A DNA stretch of 64,000 bases from Vitrella brassicaformis CCMP3155 (GCA_001179505.1 CDMY01000479.1:1-64000); one strand, 5' to 3'. Shown: positions 40,114-52,177, counted from the stretch's first letter. Translations and numbers: made by a program. Notes: a model not told the origin generated them from the letters alone.

Positions 40114-43100
40114 TTAGTTGAGTTTGTCCTGTTGCGGGCTGTACTCCTTGACGATATCAACATCGCCCTGCAGTCCACACACACACACACACACACACAC
40201 ACGGCCCCATCGAGACACACACACAACAAAAGAGAGAGTCTGACACTCCTGGCTGTCTTGAAGTATGCCCTCGCAGATATATAGTACTACCTCTTTTGTG
40301 GCGGTGTCTCCTGCTGCTTCCTCATCCCCGCTGTTTTTCTTGATGACGACTGTCCCCTTCTTGGCGGGCTTGGCCACCCTCGATGAGGCCTTGCTGCTCG
40401 CCGTGCTGTCCAGGGCCATCGAGTCGTCGTCGTGGACGTCGTCTTCGTCACTCTGCACGCAATCATGTGGACGGATGAAGGGAGAGAGGGACGGATGAAG
40501 GGATGTGTGTGTGTGTGTGTGTGTGTGTGGACGTGTGTGTTGCGATATTACGTCTGCATCGATGTCGATTTCCTCGGCCCACACCTGGATGTCCTCGGGG
40601 TCTGACGGGCCCTGTGTGGTGTGGGAGAGAGAGCAACACGCGGTTGTCTGTCTGTGTCTGTGTGTAATGCCATGTGTGTGGGCGGCCCACGCCCGGCGCA
40701 CCGTGTCCTTCTCCGCCACATCTGACGGCAGCTCGTGTGAGTAGGCATACCTGAGTGCGGCCACACACACACACACACACACACATGAGTGGAAGGACAT
40801 GAATCGCGCTGTTTGTGTGTGTGGCGTGCCAGCCAGCAATTATTATCAGACTTACTTACCGCTGTGAGTGTCTGTGTGGCGCCCACAGCCACATTATGGC
40901 CACCAAGACAAAGAGAAAGAGCAGGTGGGAGATGCCGTCGGTCAGCAGCCATTGGGACTGCCACCGAGCCGTCACATTCTGCACACACAAGACACCCACC
41001 CCCGCCCGCAGACGGTCACACACCAAGACACACAGAGGTATGTCTGCTGCGTCTTGACGTGAGGACCTGGGAGAGGTATGTGATCTGGTAGATGAGAGCC
41101 GCCGCAGCGATGATGAGCGACATGACTAGCACGTTCCACAGCCGCGTGAACAGCAGCAGCTTCTCTGTCTGCTTGCGGGCGCGCAGCTTCTGTCGCACGC
41201 AATGTAAGAACGAAATGAGCGGAGCGTATGTGTGTGTGTGTGTGTATTGTCTAATTCTGCGTGTGGGCACACACAGATATGTACCATGATGAGGGCGGAG
41301 AGTGATGTAAAGATCCAGTAGAAGAGGATGGCGTTGAGCAGAGAGACGGGGAAGAGACACATCAGCACAAAGGCGAAGTTGAAGGCGTGGGAAGACCCGT
41401 AATTCAGCACCACCAGCCTGTCAGTCGTAGGTATAAGTCCACCAAACAAACCACACATACTCACACACAATCTGTTCGGCACGCGACTGACCTGCAGGTG
41501 TCCAAGATCGTGTAGACGATCGACGTCTGCCGTATTCGCCGCACCACTGACGCCTCCAACGTGGCCCTGACCACACCCCACCCTGCACACACACACGCAG
41601 ATCAGATGGATGTGTGTGTGTGTGTGTGTGTGTGTGGCGGGGGAGGGTACGATACCGAGGCTGGCTACGAGGACGAGCATATAGGAAACGATGCACTTGA
41701 CGACCGACAGGACGATGGCGCAGAAGAAGAGGGCGTGTATGCGGTAGCCGTAGGTGTTCCACCAGTGAAGGTGCACGTGCCACAACACACACTCCAGAAA
41801 CCCCAGAAATATCACGCCTTGCCACAAACAAACAGAGAGATAAGAAGGCATGAGAAGGCGTGCAATGGACGCCTGTGTGGGGGCGGGGGCTGGCCATCGC
41901 ATATATCGTACCCGCGATGCACATTTGTATTTTGATGAGTTCGGTGTTCCAGCGGAGGGAGGCCGCAAACCAGACCACAGACAAGAACATGTAGGCCAGG
42001 GTCAGATACCCTGAAGCATAGATAGTGCACAGACATGACGTCACATGACGTCCACCAATAAAGACGCGTTTGTTTGTTCTGTCAGTGAAGGCACCGTAGA
42101 AAGGCATTCGAGGGTATTCGCTGCCCGGCAGATAGCCGTAGGGATTCTTCACCACCACTTTGCCGCTTATCGTACCCCTGTGACCCACAGGAATACGGAG
42201 GAGGCATACACACCTTCTTGTCTGTGTGTGTGTGTGTGTGCACAAACAAAGCCATACCCTTTCTTGTCCCCACAGTTGGAGAAGGTCAGCACATAGACGC
42301 CCGTCTGGCTCAGCAGCTGCCGGTCTCTGTATGTGTAAGCACACAGCGGCAGTGCACACAAACACACACACACAGAGGAGAGGCAATAATGGATGGATGG
42401 CAGGTCACTCACCTGGCTGGGTGTGGGCCGTATTCGATGCCGTGTCGGTACATTGGCTTCTCCCTCGACCCAATCAGAGTGTCCTTGACCGAACAGAGGC
42501 CCTGTTCAATACGCACACACACAAACACCCCTCATATGGACGGCTGGCTGGATGGATGGATGCGGGCAGTGAATGGCCTTCTCACGACAGCAATGTCATC
42601 TTCGTTGCAGCAGAACTTCTGCGGCGATATAATCGACCAAAAGTCTGAACACACACACACGAACCACACACCACAACAGACAGCAATCAATAAGCCTCCC
42701 CGCTCTCCATCCGGCCCTGCCCACCAGTGAATCGCATCAGCGACAGCTCCACCCCCACATAGTCCCGAAACTTCTGCACGTCCCCTCCGCCCTTCCCGGT
42801 GAATTCCATCCCCTCGAACGTCACCTGCGCCTCCCCACCTCCCCGGCCAGCGGGGCTGTCCTCTTTCCCGTACACAAAGAAGCTGTTGAGCACCTACACA
42901 CACACCCGCCCACGCACACACATACAGGCTCCCATCCATCGCTCTCTCTCTCTCTCTCTCTGTTGCTGACATTGAGCTGTTTGTTGTCGGGGATCGGGGT
43001 GTCACGGAACTCATAAACCTGCGCCAGGGCCATCCTCCATGGGATGAGGAGGGCCGTGAGCAGCAGCTGGCCAGGTTTCGGCCCACGCCATGGACGGATC

Positions 43101-43129
43101 TGCCAAATCTCTCGCGGATCTGTCCCCAT
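40114..43129 (-). CDS. TMEM87/GPR107-family (Lung_7-TM_R) seven-transmembrane protein
   Basis: N-terminal leader, lumenal FCC motif, GKVVVKNPYGYLPGSEYPRMPFYG, YMFLSVVWFAASLRWNTELIKIQMCIA, GVIFLGFLEC, further hydrophobic helices, YAYSHEL and an acidic tail ending QQDKLN* at 40114. Confidence 0.82.
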
Positions 43130-43339
43130 GGCACCCTGTAGTCAAACCTACTGGTGGAAAGGAGAAAAACGATACGCGGGAAACGGCGATCGCGCGCTAA
43201 GCTCGCAGGCAGGGAAGGGAAGGAAAAGATGGCTGTGTTGAGTCATTCTTGACGAGTTCGGCACAGAGATGGCACTCACAGGTGAAAGTTCAAGTTGTTC
43301 GGCCTCTTTTGGTGGCTGATTGATTCACTGAGCTGACCA

Positions 43340-46300
43340 ATGGAGAGCACGGCGGCGTCACCGCCCTGTGTGGGCGAGCAGGAGGCGCAGACAGTGCTGC
43401 AGGAGATCTCTGCCGAGCCATTGATTGTCTGTGGGTCACTCCCGAGCGAACGAGATGCGAATTACCTCGTCCGAAAGAGGTCAGTCGTGATGAGGGCCGC
43501 TGAGCGATTGGCACACTGTCTTTGGCTGCCTGTTGGTGTGTGCAGCTCGGAAGCAGCGCCGTGCTACGTGCTGAAGATCAGCAATGAGAGCGACCAGCCG
43601 TCTTTGATTGACTGCCAGAATGAACTGATGGTACTTACACGCACACACGCACAGCACACGGCTGTCTGTTTCTGGATCATTCATGTGGCTGTGTGTCGTC
43701 GTCAGGCGCACCTCGCCCGCCATGCAGGCCCAGGGCGATTCACCGTGCCCACTCCCCTGCTGCTCAAGAACGGCTCCCACACCATGCGGACAACAGGCGG
43801 CGGCCATCTCTGCCGGCTGCTCACCTACCAGCAGGGCGTCCCTCTGGCGGATTTCTCGCCACACGACGCCACCCTCCTCGGGCGAGTCGGTCGGGTGATT
43901 GGGCATGTGACGAGTGCGCTGTGCTGGTTTGTACATAGCGGGGCGGAGAGGGCGATCGTGTGGTCGATGGAGCGGTGTGGAGAGGTCATTGGGGCGCATC
44001 TGGGGCACATGAGCGGCAGCCAGGAGGGGGACACGGAGGTGATAAAGAGATGGCTGGAGAGGTATACGAACGTCATCGAGCCGAAGATGAGAGACCTGCC
44101 AAGGGTCAGCCTGCACTGCACTAATGCATTTTATCTGCCGCCGCAGCGATTCATCTTTGTTTTGCAGGGTGTGCTTCACGGCGACCTCAACGACCGCAAT
44201 ATCTTGGTCGACTACCGCTGGGAGGGCCGGGCGGGGGAGGGCACACACAGCGTGGCCGTCATCGACTATGGGGACGTCAGCTGCGGGCCCAGGGTGAGTG
44301 ACAGACAGATGCACACAGACGACATGAATGAAAGGACTGTCGTCGTTGTTTGCTTGCAGGTATCTGACCTGGCCATCGCGATGTCCTATGTGATGTACCG
44401 GAAGGAGGAGCCACTCGCGTGTGTCATGCCATTTGTCGCAGGGTGGGTGGGTGAGGGGCCGATCAACACGCATATTGACTTCGGCCATGGAGGGATGGAT
44501 GGATGGATGTGTTTTGTGTGTCAGGTATCACAGCGTGCATCCGCTGACTGAGGGCGAAGTGGACGTCCTCTTCGACCTCTCACTCATGCGGCTCGCAACC
44601 ACAGTCGTTATGGCCGCACACCATGTACGCCAACGAGGATACACACACGCACAGAGAGGGGAGGGTATCCACAATGAGTATGGTCTTTCATGTTGCTGGC
44701 AGCGGTCGATTAGGCCCGAGAATGCTTATCTGTCTGTTTCCGAGAGCGGGGCTCTGCGGCTCCTGCGTCTGCTCGACTCAACTGTCGATGTCAACCACCT
44801 GCTGCCGCGAGCCATCCTCCGACACACGTGCAATATGGTACGCGCCGTATGCGACCACAAACACCACCACACAACGCCCTTCTCGGTCGGCCTTCAGGCG
44901 CCCATCCCCTCTGCGCCGTCCCTGCACTCACTCGCGCCGCCCCACGTTGTGCGGCCCCCTTCATGTCTGGCGGTCGTCGACCTCACCAGCAGCAGCCACC
45001 TGATCGAGTGCGACGCCGAGATGTTCGCTGTGAGGGGCGGCGTCGACTGGGAGAGGCGGCCTACTGACCTCGGGGCCAAGATGGACCAGGAAATGGTAAT
45101 GGGGGGTGGGCGGATGGGATGGGATGAGATGTCCTCAATGTCCGCTGTGTGCATCCGTTGAGTCAGGGCGTGGACCAGTGTGTGGCGATGAGCGGCTACA
45201 TGGACGCCTGGCCCGTTCCTCTGTGCGGCATCAACGGGCCCTCTCCCTCCCCCTCCCCCTCCCCTGGTCACCCCCGCGACCACCTTCTGCGCGACGGCTG
45301 CATCCGCCCCTCTCTCGCCACCACACAAATCGGACGCACCTTCTTCCTTCGCTCGCCGGCAGCCGAGCCAGTGGGGTTCGCTCGGCACCAACGCGGCAAA
45401 GGCGGCCAGTGGGAGGTGTTCTGTCCTCTCGATGGGTGTGAGTTGCTGCACGTGGATGCGGCGAGCAGGAGAGGGACGGGGCTGGTGGTGCTGCTGCAGC
45501 GGGTGTCCTCTCAGGTGCGGGAGGTGTCGAGCGCGTCCACTCTGACGGGCGGGGCCAACAGCAATAGCAGCCCACCGGCTTCAGACTGCGATGAGGACCC
45601 ACCCCACCACCACCAGCAGCAGCAGCAGCAGGCGCCCACAACAGACGTGTATTGGCTCATTGCGGGGCTGCATGGCCCCTCGCTAGACACGAGAAGGCAG
45701 GGCAGGGCTATCAGCAAGGGAGACATTATCGGCCCTGTGGATGTGGGCCAGTGGGGGTGTGCCGGGCTGGAGGGAGTGGCGACACTGCCGCCGAGGGTCC
45801 ACGTGACGGCTGCCTTTGACCTATGGGGCCACGAGGCCGACCCTGCGGCCTTTCCAACTCGCTGCACGCGGAGGCTCAAGGTCAGTACACACACACAAAC
45901 CGCAATTGTGGCCCGAGACACACACCATCTCTCTCTCTGTGTGGTACTGCAGGAGGTGTATGAGTGCTTGTGTCCGGACCCTGCCGTGCTTCTGGGTCTG
46001 CTTCCCTCCGCTGTGGGTGTGGGTGTAGAGGCCAAGATGTCTTTGTGTGACGGCATGGTGCACGTCGGTGCCCCCTCTGTGCTGGCCGGGGGCAAGAGGG
46101 ACCCTGAAGAGCTGAAACGGGTGAAGATCCTCTTGTATGCGGGTGTCTTCACCCAGCGCGTGTGCGCCTGTGTGTGTTGTGCAGATAAGGCGTGACGTTC
46201 TGGGCAGGAATCTGTCGCTCAACTACAAGGCGGACCCTGTCAAGGTCGTCAGGTGAGCCATTCGCCATGGTGCATATGGACGGACGGATGGATGGATGGA

Positions 46301-48690
46301 TTGATGGATGTGTGCAGGGGCAGCGGTCAGTACTTGTACGACGAGACGGGGCGGGCCTACCTTGACTGCGTCAACAACGTCACACACGTGGGACACGGCA
46401 ACCCCATTGTCGTCAGGTACAAGCTTCAGACACACACACACACGCATCAAGCAACGACATTTCCTCAAACATGTGTGTGTGTGTGTGTGTGTGTGCAGGG
46501 CGCTGCAGCAGCAGATGGAGGTGCTCAACACCAACTGCCGCTACCTCCATGACGCACTGGTCGAGTACGCCGCACAGCTCCTGGCCCTATTCCCTGACCC
46601 TCTCAGGTAGACAGACACCCACACGCGCACACAGACAGACAAACGCATGGTATGGATGGAAATCGGTGTCTCTGTGCAATCTATGCGTTCAGAGTGGTGT
46701 ATTTGGTCAACACGGGCACCGAGGCGAACGAGCTGGCCCTGCGGCTGGCACAGACACACACCAAGCGGAGAGACGTTCTCATTGTCGACCACGCATACCA
46801 CGGTAGAACATCCATCCATCCATCCATCTGTGTGTGTGTATATGCCTGTGTCTTGCAGGCAACTCGAGCGGTCTGATCGGCATGTCGCCGTACAAGTGTG
46901 ACGGCAAGGGCGGCAGCGGCGTGCACGACTGGGTCCACAGGGTCCCCATACCCGACAGATACAGAGGACCCGCCACATACGACGACCCACAGGCAACCAC
47001 AACCACACCCACACCCACACAATCCTCTGTCTCTGTGCATCCCTCTCTCTCCCTCTCCCTCCCTCTCCCTGTTTGTGTGTGTGCTGCAGGCCGGTGACTA
47101 TTATGCGTCCCACGTCGAGCGCGTCATCCGCGAGTCCAAACGTCCCATCGCCGCTTTCTTCGCCGAGTCGGTGCTCTCGTGCGGGGGGCAGGTGTTCCAC
47201 CCGCCCGACTACCTCTCGGCCGTATACGCCATTGTGCGTGCGCATGGGGGCGTGTGCGTGGCCGACGAAGTGCAGACGGGCTTTGGGCGGGTTGGGGGGG
47301 ACAAGTGGTACGCATGGATGGATGTGCACACAGAGAGAAAGGACTCATGGATGTGTGTGTGTGTGTGTGCAGGTGGGCGTATGAGTCGAGTGGCGTCATG
47401 CCTGACATAGTGGCGATGGCCAAGCCCATCGGCAATGGACACCCGCTCGCGGCAGTCGTCACAACCACCGAGGTGGGTGGCATGCTCACTCCCTCTCACT
47501 CACTAACAAGCAGCCGCACGCACACCGACGAGCATCACTTGCGTATGTGCACGATCCGTGCAGATCGCTGCGTCGTTTGACAACGGCATGGGCTGGTTCA
47601 ACACGGTACGTGCAGGCACAAATCATACCCGCATTCATTTTCGCCACTCGCGCGTGTGAGTGGATCTGACCGGTGTGATGCTGTGATGCATCCAGTATGG
47701 CGGCAATCCCGTCTCGTGTATCGTCGGCTTGTCCGTGCTCAAGGCCATCAACGAGGTGCGCAAAAGTGCACGAATCCTACATGCACACACACACACACAC
47801 ACACTCGCATCTCTACTTGTGTGTCATCCACACACGCAGCTTGGTCTCCGCGAGAACGCCCACGTGAGCGGCAGGAGCCTGCTCGACGGGCTGAAGACCC
47901 TCATCGAGACGAGCGACTGTGTGGGGGACGTGCGGGTACGCCACTCAGCACTTGACACTGGATGCCATCTGAATGCGTGTGTGCATGCGGCTATAGGGTG
48001 AGGGCCTGATGGCGGGCATCGAGATGGTCGAGTGCAAGCGGACCAAAGCGCCAGCGCCGGCAAAGGTGGGTCCTGATGGATACGGCAGGCAATGTGTCGA
48101 TGTGTGTGTGTGCGTATGGTCCACGCAGGCCAACTACGTCATTAACCGGATGAGGCAGCTGGGCTTTTTGCTCAGCACAGATGGGCCCTTCGACAACGTC
48201 GTCAAAGTCAAGCCGCCCATGCTCTTCTCGGTACACAACTGCAGCCGCACACACACGCATGTGCCATCGCGTCATCGGAAACAGGTTGCCGACGGCCGTG
48301 CCTTGGTGGATGCCCTGAGAGTGGTGCTCAAGGAGACGCCCATGACCGTCAAGACACCAATGCGGCTGCCAATTGTGTCAAGACAAACAGCCAGAGATGC
48401 AGCTGGTCAGCCAGCACAAGCGCACCAATCCCTCCCCACACCCACTGCACTCCTCCACACACCACCTCATCTTATCTTCAGGCCCCCATCGGCAGCTTCC
48501 CTCTTTCTGGGACGATTGCCGCCAGCCCACTCCCCTCCGCACACAGTTCGACCGTCACGAGTTCGACGCCCATGTGCCTGCGAAACGGCCTGGTTACGGC
48601 CACAAGGCCCGGCGGCTGATGGTGGCCCTCAGCACGTGTGGCGCGATGGTGTTGGCTGTGCTGCTCGCATGGGCCAGGCGAGAGGGATGA
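43340..48690 (+). CDS. Tri-domain fusion: hydroxylysine/aminoalcohol kinase-like (APH fold) + degenerate M23-peptidase-like domain + class III PLP aminotransferase/phospho-lyase, with predicted C-terminal tail anchor
   Basis: Kinase: [32 protein letters not shown]. Middle: [24 protein letters not shown]....[16 protein letters not shown] domain: [88 protein letters not shown]. Last exon ends [26 protein letters not shown]. Confidence 0.88.
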
Positions 48691-49206
48691 TGGGGTGGGT
48701 GCGATGGGCACAATGTGTCCGTACCTGCGGGGATGCTGTGTGTGTGCTCAAGGCGCACATGCACGAGGCAGTCAGTGTTGATGCAGACCCGTCCGCAACA
48801 GCGTGGGTGTGGGTAAAAGAGGGAGGGAGGGGTTTTTGCCTGTTTGTTCTTTTTTCTTCTGACGCCAGCCACTTTTTGCTGCCTGGTATTTTGGGTGGGG
48901 CAGTCGGTGTGTCGGTCGGTGATGGTATTTTTCTCCTTTTGTTTGCTCTTCCTGCCTGCCTGGGGAATGGGCGGTGAGTTTCATCCACGTCATGTCAACG
49001 CCCTCGACGCGACTGGACAGTCACAGATCGAAGTCCACCCTGCTGATTGAAGACGGGACACAGTCGATGTCCGATCCATGTGAAATTATCCATCTGTTTG
49101 CTGGGATGCCATCGCGGCTGCATTTCTCATTCGTTCAATCATGGCACCGGCTTAGCTCGCAGATTTCCAAAGAAAACCGCTCGAGGTCTGCAGGGCGTGT
49201 ATCGTT

Positions 49207-51835
49207 ATGCTTCGTGATGACCGTGTGGTGGTGTGGTCGTCGTGGCATGAGTTCAAGGATGTGAGAGATCGCATCTTCTCCGCCAACCTCCACCACAAGA
49301 AAGACGCAACCAACAGGGTGGGTAACAGAGGCGCCAGAAATGAATGACAGGAGGGAGGACAAGGAAGACCGAAGATCTTCACGAATTCGTGCTCCTCTGT
49401 CGGATGTGTGTTTGGTTGATTGTGTCCAGGTTGATCAGTGGCGCAGGCGGGGCAAGGTGCCTGTGGCCGTGGATGCGACGGCCAACCTGCTGTCTGTCAT
49501 GCTCAATGACCCGTGAGAGAACAGACAGCACACAGATTCAGACAACCGCATGCACTGCTCTCACACCTGTATGTGTGTGTGTGTGTGCATTCAGTGACGT
49601 CAATCCGTTCACTGAGGCGCCTCGTGACGACACAGAGCTGCGCCTCCTCTACGCCATGACTATCGTCAGGTGCACCACAGCACACACACTATATAATGGC
49701 ATGGTGTGTGTGTCATGTGTCTGCAGGGTGGTGAATGGCTTTGTTGACCAGGCACAGGAGAAGCAGTTCGCCCGGTCGGTCGCGCTGCTGGCGAGTCAGC
49801 TGGGGCTGCCGCCCTTTCTGGTGGATCTGCGGCACCAGGCCACGCACGCCGAGCTGCCCAACAGGGCCCAACTGAGGTACACGAAGCATGCCGAAGAAGG
49901 GTCCTGGGTTTGATAGTGTGCCAATCGTGTTGTGGGTATTTGCAGGTTTGCCGTGCAGGAGTTGGAGCAGCTGTTGAGGCAGCGATTCTGGTGAGCAAGG
50001 CGATCGCCCTCGTGCACCTGCCCACTCGTGTATCCTCTTTGTCTGTGTGTGCAGGGATCCACAGATGGCCCGTCTTGACGCCTTCTTCTCAGTGGGCAAC
50101 CTGGAAAAGGTCAGCTTACACACACGCACACACCTCTCTCGGGCCATCGTGCGTCCTCCATTCTCCATTTCAGTGTTTTCTGCCCCCTGTGCGTCGCCTC
50201 GTCGCGCTCATTCCATCTGTGAGCCTGCCGGTGCTTGACCATGGCAATGGTGATGCGATCGACATGGATGCCTTGGCAGCTGAGATGCCCCCCGAAGACG
50301 ATCAGCCACAGGTACGCAAGTGCAAGGCCTTCGGTGCACTAAGGCGGGCACCTGAAGTGTGTGTGTGTGTGTGTGTGTGGTGATCAGAGGAAGGGCAAGA
50401 AGCGGCGTCGGGTCGATGCGGAGGAGAGGGTGAAGAGGTCACCACAACAAATCAAAGGCGCCCTCGTGGACAAGGTGCGGGAGACCCACACCCAACTACG
50501 TGTCTTCTCATATCCTATCATATGCTTCTGCCGGATGTCTCCATCAGTCGGTGGCTGCCTTCACGTCGGTGTGGTCCGAGGCCAGATCAGCCGTGTCCAA
50601 TTGCCCTGACGAAGTCCTGCTCCTCTCAATCGTCACGGAGTGCCTGCAGCAGATGCATGACCCGTACCTGCAGCCTCTCTCTCTGATGGCCCTCCACCTC
50701 ATCTGCGGGGCCGCGTCATGCAACCTCGCTGTCAGGTCAGAACACGTGACATCAGCGCACACGGACACACCTGCGCCGTCCATCCCTTCTCTGTCTTGCC
50801 TTTCAGGGTCGTGTCGTCCATCTTCCATGCCCTCCTCTCCCCCTCTCCCTCCCAACCACCTCGCGAGCAGCTGCAGGGCAGCACTGAGGTGCGGTATCAG
50901 TCCGTCCGGGGCCAGCCATATCGTTGGAAGCTGGCGCGGGGCGGCTCTGGTCTGGCTGACCGGCAAGTTGGCGACAGGGGCGATGATGTGAGGAAAGGGT
51001 GGATGGCTGCTCTGGGCGTGGCGCAGGAGGGCATTGATGGCGACACTGCCGACTCTTCTCCTGAAGGTCACACGGGAGTGATGATCCTCTCTCTTTCCCT
51101 TCCCACTGGTGGGTGTTCGATTCCCCTGTGCAGCACCTGAGAGGACCCACCTGCGGTGGCTGAGAGCCGTCCTGAGCCTCCCCCCTTCGCCCACTCAGCC
51201 GGCCACACACGCCGCCCCATCCCCCGCTCTCTCGTCATTCCATTCGCTGGCGTTGGCCGCGCCCCTGGCCCAGCTGTCTAACACCGAGGGCGGCAGTGTC
51301 TACCATCGCGGCATAAGGCGGCTGCACGAGGCGGTCAGGTGTGTCGCGCCACACGCCATCGGCACGGCCGTGGGGCACATAGCGCGTCATGGCGCCAATG
51401 ACAGGGCGGCAGCGGGGCTTCTCGGCGCTTTGGGAGAGGCAGGTATGTGGGCGACATAAATGACAATGAATGGCTTTCCGCCACTTACACACGAGGGGGT
51501 TTGTGGTGTCTTTTAGGCATCCTGACGAGCACGATCGCCACGTTGCTGCAGTGGATGGGTGAGAGGGGCATCACCGACATCATCAGCACACCACCACAAG
51601 ACACTCGTCATGCAGCAGAGAAGGGGGCAACAGCTGATGCACGGCAAAATGGAGGCGACGACTTGCAGGACTGTGTGGCGGATGGCCTCGTGCCTCCCTC
51701 GGTGTCGGCCAGTGGTGTGGCGTCAGAGGTGCTGCCGCTGACGGTCGAGGGCACATGGTGGGACCCCCAGACATGGACCATACACGACGTGAGCGAGCCT
51801 GTCAAACAAGCACTCGTGTGCGGGGGTGTTTGTCA

Positions 51836-51868
<33 letters not shown>

Positions 51869-52177
51869 AGTGTGCAGAGTCTGCCTGTGGAGGGCTTCTT
51901 CCGTCCAGTGTGCCCTGTCGCATCGACCGCACAGCCAGCGACACCACCCAGAAGAACAGCAGCCCCACGTGCACCACGGCCAAGCGACACGGACGAGGTC
52001 TTACCGGTGGACGGTCTCGCTGTCCCGCAGATGCTCTGCGCGCCTTTTGCGCTTGTGCCGGAAGGGCAAAACGGTGCTGCAGCTGCTGTGAATGGTGTAG
52101 TGAGCGAGGGGCACAGTGATGGTGTGGATGGGAGGAGGCTGCAGATAGACTGGTCGAAAGTCGTGCCTCTCCTGTGA
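49207..52177 (+). CDS. LAS1: LAS1-like HEPN endoribonuclease (pre-rRNA ITS2 processing)
   Basis: MLRDDRVVVWSSWHEFKDV..VDQWRRRGKVPVAVDATANL..ELRLLYAMTIVRVVNGFVDQAQ..ARSVALLASQLGLPPFLVDLRHQATHAELP, containing the HEPN RHxxxH motif. C-terminus approximate (IDWSKVVPLL*). Confidence 0.87.

Follow-up and report, generated by a model that had tools for sequence, protein, structure and literature searches.

How does a gene that reads as a bacterial multi-domain enzyme come to be carried, cut by many introns, in the genome of an alga, and what could its product do there? The question is raised by a locus of Vitrella brassicaformis CCMP3155 located at positions 43340-48690 (plus strand) of a stretch of 64,000 nucleotides (nt), called here the window. 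The original prediction, made from the sequence alone, saw at this place a single gene joining a kinase of the APH fold, an M23-like middle domain and a class-III domain using pyridoxal phosphate (PLP), with a membrane anchor at its end. Our analysis makes it fairly probable that this is a nuclear Vitrella gene derived from a bacterial APH-M23-class-III PLP fusion of the PRK06148 type, which likely arrived by an old horizontal transfer and was then "eukaryotised".

Is it one gene? By manual joining of the open frames found in the three-frame translation of 43000-49200, we obtained a model of 24 exons and 23 introns. It runs from an ATG at 43340, directly preceded by an in-frame stop codon, to a TGA at 48688-48690; the coding sequence is 3684 nt long and the product counts 1227 amino acids (aa). 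The introns, 54-97 nt in size, are of the GT-AG type for 22 of the 23 and GC-AG for the remaining one, intron 15; many introns (about 20) had been predicted, and 23 spliceosomal introns are present. The exons and the two introns discussed below are the following.

43340-43479, 43546-43630, 43706-44104, 44168-44293, 44360-44442 and 44525-44624, plus strand: exons 1 to 6
44703-44837, 44898-45095, 45167-45880, 45953-46120, 46185-46252 and 46318-46416, plus strand: exons 7 to 12
46499-46606, 46693-46802, 46859-46992, 47090-47307, 47373-47472 and 47564-47605, plus strand: exons 13 to 18
47696-47755, 47840-47935, 47997-48065, 48129-48230, 48285-48405 and 48482-48690, plus strand: exons 19 to 24
46993-47089, plus strand: intron 15 (GC-AG), placed there because exon 15 must be 134 nt long by the contig record coordinates
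48406-48481, plus strand: last intron, 76 nt, phase 1, GT-AG, whose removal brings the tail exon into frame

The model is identical, letter for letter, to a public protein of 1227 aa (P0121) that came out of our search with the kinase piece. It is annotated as "unnamed protein product [Vitrella brassicaformis CCMP3155]" and, in UniRef, as "Aminoglycoside phosphotransferase domain-containing protein". The gene is already in public databases, nameless there, and as far as literature searches show it is undescribed: these searches found no publication on the Vitrella gene, on PRK06148/PRK06149 or on a comparable transfer into Vitrella.

Transcripts support the model. The stretch is contained in eight public runs, four of which were aligned to 43300-48800, and contigs skipping introns were present in all four (three studies), which indicates that they derive from RNA, whatever the run labels say. 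Explicit GT..AG joints number ten (introns 9, 10, 13 and 17-23), for intron 1 the evidence is a pair of neighbouring pieces within a single contig (X2 record 7), and ten further introns are implied by contig-length arithmetic; these individual checks covered all introns but 2 and 16. Exon lengths match the contig record coordinates exactly, with 642 nt for exons 4-8 and 519 nt for exons 11-15. In run X7, record 14 (1828 nt) begins about 99 nt before the ATG, covers exons 1-8 and enters exon 9, and record 15 (2412 nt) starts in exon 9, takes in every PLP exon as well as the tail exon and reaches about 430 nt past the stop, in the 3' untranslated region; the two meet within exon 9 at a CAG repeat, 45596-45643 being skipped as a repeat in the read alignment. 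Since the contigs connect the exons of the kinase with those of the middle, PLP and tail parts, this is a single gene, in agreement with the prediction that these parts are spliced together.

The donor of intron 15 (CAG/GCAACC, the slash marking the junction) is the GC of the series, and a canonical GT lying in frame 36 nt downstream (47029) would also preserve the frame. We considered this GT as donor, but the 519 nt to which exons 11-15 sum in the contigs exclude it and place the donor at 46993.

The last intron deserves particular attention, as it commands the tail of the protein. RNA contigs had been proposed as the check for this intron and the tail: a joint 48404->48481, recorded as "skips 76, GT..AG (cut +1)", was found in runs X1, X7 and X8, which belong to three studies, and these contigs include the tail exon. 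The original prediction named transcripts splitting the locus or devoid of the hydrophobic last exon as arguments against itself; the contigs instead join the parts and contain the tail. The hydrophobic last exon belongs to the main mRNA. Phase 1 was rightly predicted for this intron; it follows ...GCTG/GT, not AAG, and its limits move from about 48411-48480 to 48406-48481.

As a side observation, many introns contain repeats of GGATGG or runs of the form (CA)n...(TG)n (44486-44512, 46271-46316, 46430-46498, 46810-46830 and 47315-47372). These bins display a several-fold higher word depth in the RNA contigs and spurious long-range "joints", e.g. 44508->46987, so that the same motifs must be common across the transcriptome.

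What does this gene resemble? The protein can be divided as follows.

43340-44924, plus strand: APH-fold (hydroxylysine-kinase-like) kinase, residues 1-365, exons 1-8, delimited by Pfam APH and the bacterial-fusion profile
44925-46093, plus strand: degenerate M23/LytM-like region, residues 366-707, delimited by collinear alignment and, from residue 580, by profile alignment
45527-45643, plus strand: low-complexity insert in the M23 relic, residues 543-581, absent from the aligned bacterial homologues
46094-48350, plus strand: class-III PLP domain of the phospho-lyase type, residues 708-1140, exons 10-23, Pfam Aminotran_3
48351-48687, plus strand: C-terminal extension, residues about 1141-1227, beyond the end of the bacterial homologues
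48616-48675, plus strand: predicted tail-anchor helix L1204-A1223, by Kyte-Doolittle hydropathy

The kinase-M23-aminotransferase III architecture was claimed to be bacterial, and the Vitrella protein is indeed collinear with a large family of bacterial fusions. One of these, WP_160786465.1 of Shinella zoogloeoides (1016 aa), contains APH, Peptidase_M23 and Aminotran_3 by Pfam and is collinear with it from the first residues to about residue 1140. Hidden Markov models (HMMs) of the bacterial fusions match, in the same sequence of parts, residues 1-366 and 580-1137, and the best NCBIfam model, PRK06148 (NF004799), matches in two stretches. With the bacterial fusions Vitrella thus has in common the domain order, the full-length collinearity and the catalytic residues of the kinase and of the PLP domain; proper to Vitrella are the 23 introns, the degraded M23, the low-complexity inserts and an extension of 87 residues with a hydrophobic helix. 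The full-length bacterial fusions among the matches measure 992-1053 aa, but for one of 1083 aa, and three shorter rows are without the M23 domain. The family is also present on plasmids: tblastn of the kinase exons gave 103 records, those listed being mostly rhizobial and some annotated as class-III aminotransferase.

When the kinase piece was compared with 1.84 billion representatives, only P0121 itself fell below 1e-30. The next match (6e-18, 40% identity) is a fusion of 1028 aa, carried by a marine metagenome contig of 188 kb whose gene order is bacterial, and the top kinase matches bearing names are Anaerolineae and Chloroflexota. Word searches, taking the best 120 matches each, gave for the whole protein organism-named matches that were all bacterial, the others being metagenome proteins without organism name (36-38% full-length identity), and for the PLP domain the same pattern at 53-59% identity. 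The same search with the Shinella fusion as query was filled by close Rhizobiales relatives and is uninformative on eukaryotes. In the Atlas, the clusters closest to the full protein are 100% bacterial, a scan of JGI metagenomes for close relatives found nothing closer than 49% identity, and a eukaryotic HYKK sought by cluster look-ups among the 20 top kinase matches was not there, only bacterial or metagenome entries. Among the listed matches of three large protein searches and one metagenome scan, we found no close eukaryotic relative.

Such a bacterial look could raise the suspicion of an artefact, either bacterial contamination or two or three adjacent genes wrongly merged. Nothing beyond this look speaks for it, and both forms are ruled out by the 23 spliceosomal introns, the contigs linking the exons, the eukaryotic neighbours and the identical public model; the chance that an artefact explains the locus is negligible. 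The gene lies on a 68.7-kb contig (CDMY01000479.1, assembly GCA_001179505.1), its nucleotide composition and intron load are fully host-like, and it is flanked by ordinary eukaryotic genes.

40114-43033, minus strand: gene for a GOST_TM seven-transmembrane protein, upstream neighbour
49207-52177, plus strand: gene for the Las1 rRNA-processing nuclease, downstream neighbour

It is a bacterial-type gene embedded in a host genomic context.

Are its enzymatic parts intact? For the kinase, Pfam APH is found at residues 39-280 with 71 bits (cut-off 23.2), and the bacterial-fusion HMM matches residues 1-366 with 267 bits. The ATP-binding lysine K57 (VLKISN), the catalytic loop HGDLNDRN (212-219) and the metal-binding IDYGD (240-244) are intact, and of the 54 kinase columns with a bacterial conservation of 95% or more, Vitrella retains 49. 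All motifs quoted by the original prediction were recovered: the two latter ones and, in the PLP part, DEVQTGFGR (948-956), a ten-residue motif (977-986) and FNT/YGGNP across intron 18. The kinase had no match among PDB sequences, and the Pfam scan gave it no choline/ethanolamine-kinase family. Its nearest Atlas clusters are bacterial phosphotransferases and "hydroxylysine kinase", which are language-model leads only; the "hydroxylysine kinase" clusters among these neighbours are those of bacteria and chordates. HYKK/AGPHD1, a putative relative, shares with the Vitrella kinase the APH fold and the HxDxxxxN and DxGD motifs; HYKK stands alone whereas the Vitrella kinase is fused.

For the PLP domain, Pfam Aminotran_3 covers residues 734-1131 with 259 bits against a cut-off of 30.5, and 152 of the 168 columns at least 95% conserved in bacteria are retained. 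The Schiff-base lysine K979 (AKPIGNG) and D948 (DEVQ) align with the corresponding residues of human ETNPPL. This enzyme gives the best PDB match (6TOR, 417 bits), followed by the bacterial phospholyase A1RDF1 (5G4I, 295 bits), and the next families come far behind, with 185 bits for dialkylglycine decarboxylase and at most 170 bits for transaminases. The PLP domain is thus, by sequence, closer to the known phospho-lyases than to transaminases or decarboxylases. Of the phospho-lyases ETNPPL (AGXT2L1), PHYKPL (AGXT2L2) and A1RDF1, the first and the last are its closest solved relatives and align with it end to end. The top language-model cluster of this part is ethanolamine-phosphate phospho-lyase (ETNPPL), again as a lead only. 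Three indels, in the "KCDGKGGSG" region, in "ESSG..VMPD" and in "SFD.NGM", give Vitrella the bacterial length and not that of human ETNPPL. Animal ETNPPL and PHYKPL are stand-alone proteins of about 450-500 aa; the Vitrella domain differs by its fusion and its bacterial-length indels, and its activity is predicted.

The middle domain is another matter. An M23-like domain had been claimed: the collinearity holds and a relic is present, but an intact M23 is not. The Pfam scan gave no match to Peptidase_M23 (PF01551), even at E<=1, on the whole protein or exon by exon, and tblastn of exon 9, which encodes the middle domain, matched nothing on plasmids. In a MAFFT alignment the region is collinear with the M23 domain of the bacterial fusions; with a profile made from 115 closer bacterial fusions, residues 580-660 align to the C-terminal half of this domain, the N-terminal half is aligned in MAFFT only, and a narrow Rhizobiales HMM does not align the region at all. 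All five residues of the M23 signature are at least 95% conserved in the 115 fusions. In Vitrella the HxxxD motif became Q476...T480, the His of YGH became G589 and HxH became R632-V-H634, so that H634 alone is retained; likewise, of the 44 columns of this region with a bacterial conservation of 95% or more, Vitrella has only 22. The loss of four of the five zinc and catalytic residues points to a dead relic. We thus regard the region, from its sequence, as a decayed and presumably non-catalytic M23 relic with low-complexity inserts, and the protein would be bifunctional at most, not trifunctional.

An AlphaFold (AF2) model of residues 366-712, built with 44 bacterial rows, reached a mean predicted local distance difference test (pLDDT) value of 63. 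The 50 best Foldseek matches listed are nearly all M23/LytM-domain proteins, but weak (E 2.8e-3 or worse); the best 43 VIA rows are all of the M23/LytM fold, and the model superposes on LytM (2b13_A) with a VIA Z of 10.7 and a root-mean-square deviation of 2.8 Å over 128 of 131 residues, its input being M23-bearing homologues. Since the alignment came from these homologues, the fold is consistent with M23, not independently proven. The insert 45527-45643, in a loop of the relic, combines a stretch rich in Ser and Asn, an acidic patch and a run of His3-Gln6 that the CAG repeat encodes, and it has a pLDDT below 50. By the model, the relic would share both fold and loss of zinc ligands with non-catalytic LytM domains (VIA Z of 10.5 for EnvC, 9.6 for DipM and 9.5 for SpoIIQ). 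These, however, are periplasmic or forespore regulators of cell-wall enzymes, whereas the Vitrella relic lies inside a cytosolic metabolic enzyme.

From where does the gene come? The bacterial architecture, the bacterial relatives and the three indel lengths fit an origin in a three-domain gene of bacteria. The most economical reading of this architecture and distribution is a horizontal transfer, likely and probably old, and transfers into chromerids are not unusual. Several points nevertheless weigh against it. Two trees were computed, one on the full length (72 rows) and one on the PLP domain, rooted on distant class-III outgroups (65 rows), both without the eukaryotic HYKK, PHYKPL and ETNPPL. 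In neither does a well-supported bacterial clade hold Vitrella. Measured on the full length, the branch of Vitrella amounts to 2.3 changes per site; it joins the trees close to their midpoint or base and, being long and unplaced in both, does not allow a donor lineage to be named. The PRK06148 score of 855 bits, moreover, is under the curated cut-off of 1128 bits, and as each search gave its best 120-150 matches, remoter fusions from eukaryotes could rank below these. Nor does the modelled structure of the middle domain count as independent evidence of its fold. Finally, a bacterial PLP domain matches human ETNPPL with 529 bits, about as similar as it is to Vitrella, so that the scores cannot give the direction of descent; the similarity triangle Vitrella/bacterium/human ETNPPL, considered as a guide to topology, was uninformative and dropped. 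The predicted horizontal acquisition thus keeps on its side the bacterial architecture and the distribution of the relatives, while the trees leave Vitrella outside the supported bacterial clades.

These same trees could be read otherwise: the gene might have been inherited vertically from an early eukaryote, or by endosymbiotic transfer from an organelle ancestor, then lost or split in the other eukaryotes. The deep branching of Vitrella, nested in no bacterial clade, would agree with this scenario, as would the strong conservation of the PLP family between bacteria and animals (the 529 bits above), the presence of the fusion in Alphaproteobacteria and the fully host-like intron density and composition. 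It would however require many independent losses, and no eukaryotic relative appears among the best matches of the protein and metagenome searches; the separate animal enzymes, moreover, are not known to have a counterpart of the M23 relic. We hold it as quite unlikely.

What could the enzyme act on? In animals the kinase (HYKK/AGPHD1) and the phospho-lyases (PHYKPL/ETNPPL) are encoded by separate genes. The bacterial kinase-phospho-lyase fusion is reportedly known since 2012, when a paper in JBC is said to have identified hydroxylysine kinase and the two animal ammoniophospholyases by way of these bacterial fusions, bi- and tri-functional. The neighbourhoods of the bacterial genes bear on this point. 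The closest relative of the kinase, from the marine metagenome (L016:5001-10311), is followed by genes for an AlaDh_PNT-type protein and a saccharopine dehydrogenase, with a DPP-IV/S9 peptidase upstream; this arrangement links the family to lysine/hydroxylysine catabolism via 2-aminoadipate semialdehyde. The fusion of Desulfosarcina alkanivorans (L011:657-10084) stands at the end of a cluster encoding a glycyl-radical enzyme, its activase, a GntR regulator, an OCD/mu-crystallin protein and a member of the proline-racemase family, a hydroxyproline-type cluster that suggests the use of collagen-derived amino acids. Other bacterial copies adjoin peptidases and peptide or amino-acid transporters. 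In one bacterium (L015:5001-8071) the family is split into an APH + Peptidase_M23 protein of 615 aa and a separate Aminotran_3 gene, with a peptide transporter of the Opp type and an M19 dipeptidase as neighbours.

These neighbourhoods fit a catabolism of lysine, hydroxylysine or collagen peptides, which makes 5-hydroxylysine the favoured substrate, and they support the long-standing idea that the bacterial fusions act on hydroxylysine. We therefore lean, a little beyond even chances, towards 5-hydroxy-L-lysine, which would be converted via 5-phosphohydroxylysine to 2-aminoadipate semialdehyde, ammonia and phosphate. Ethanolamine, giving acetaldehyde, comes as a second and rather less probable choice. 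In its developed form this alternative supposes that a membrane-tethered kinase and phospho-lyase drain phosphoethanolamine near phospholipid synthesis rather than degrade hydroxylysine. Human ETNPPL is the best solved relative of the PLP domain (417 bits) and the top language-model cluster of this part, and a membrane anchor might suit an enzyme of lipid head groups. On the other hand, no PHYKPL structure is present among the PDB sequence matches, so that the PDB ranking cannot separate the two specificities; the kinase is APH/hydroxylysine-kinase-like, with no Pfam choline/ethanolamine-kinase match; and the bacterial neighbours indicate lysine, hydroxyproline and peptide catabolism. We consider this version improbable, and 5-hydroxylysine remains our preferred substrate.

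Where in the cell would this take place? Aligned with the Vitrella protein, the bacterial fusions stop near residue 1140; beyond this point Vitrella adds about 87 residues, the last 69 from exon 24. The claim that the last exon ends in an Arg-flanked hydrophobic helix stands, residues 1202-1227 being in frame and supported by transcripts; without splicing of the last intron, the frame would continue into about 105 non-hydrophobic residues. The Kyte-Doolittle profile (19-residue windows) peaks at 2.23 for L1204-W1222, four residues from the C-terminus, and the windows above 1.6, the only ones in the protein, cover residues 1202-1224. K-A-R-R stands just before the helix, and R-R-E-G after it closes the protein. 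We found no other hydrophobic segment and no N-terminal extension in the protein, whose N-terminus aligns directly with those of the bacteria. Judged by sequence, the helix has a textbook tail-anchor geometry: in common with eukaryotic tail-anchored proteins, Vitrella has one C-terminal hydrophobic helix, basic flanks and no signal peptide, and insertion into a membrane is predicted. The mitochondrial outer membrane or the peroxisomal membrane, suggested by the original prediction, would fit the moderate hydrophobicity and the basic flanks but is a guess for the target; the endoplasmic reticulum may be the target instead.

The hydrophobic C-terminus might alternatively be no anchor, but a neutral and recently exonised sequence, a degradation signal or an interaction helix, the enzyme being then soluble. 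The helix indeed includes Ser, Thr, Cys and Gly, its hydrophobicity is no more than moderate (Kyte-Doolittle 2.2), and the protein searches and the metagenome scan gave no homologues of the extension, so that its conservation cannot be assessed. Against this, the form containing the tail is the dominant spliced form in three runs, and a helix of about 20 residues placed four residues from the end, basic on both sides, in a protein with no other hydrophobic segment or N-terminal signal, is what one would expect of an anchor. A soluble enzyme is unlikely, and we keep the tail anchor as the better description of the extension.

In the mechanism that we propose, the N-terminal kinase would use ATP to phosphorylate an amino alcohol at its hydroxyl, and the C-terminal PLP domain would eliminate phosphate, then ammonia, from the phosphorylated product, giving an aldehyde. 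The M23/LytM relic probably persists as no more than a structural spacer that separates the two enzymes, and the 87-residue extension, as a predicted tail anchor, would keep the protein at an organelle membrane, on its cytosolic side. Taken as a whole, the picture of a gene that is the only eukaryotic copy seen so far, that gained introns, let its peptidase decay and acquired with a new exon a tail anchor placing hydroxylysine or ethanolamine degradation on the surface of an organelle, is one to which we give slightly less than an even chance.

The gene is a eukaryotic variant of a known bacterial fusion and opens no new class of biology. If our reading is true, it would nevertheless represent a transcript-supported domestication of a bacterial multi-domain metabolic gene in an alveolate alga, the coral-associated Vitrella, and would show at once the gain of introns, the decay of one module and the gain of a membrane address. 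As a natural fusion of kinase and lyase, it could be useful for testing substrate channelling in amino-alcohol catabolism, and it would offer a compact example of a bacterial metabolic fusion re-addressed inside a eukaryotic cell.

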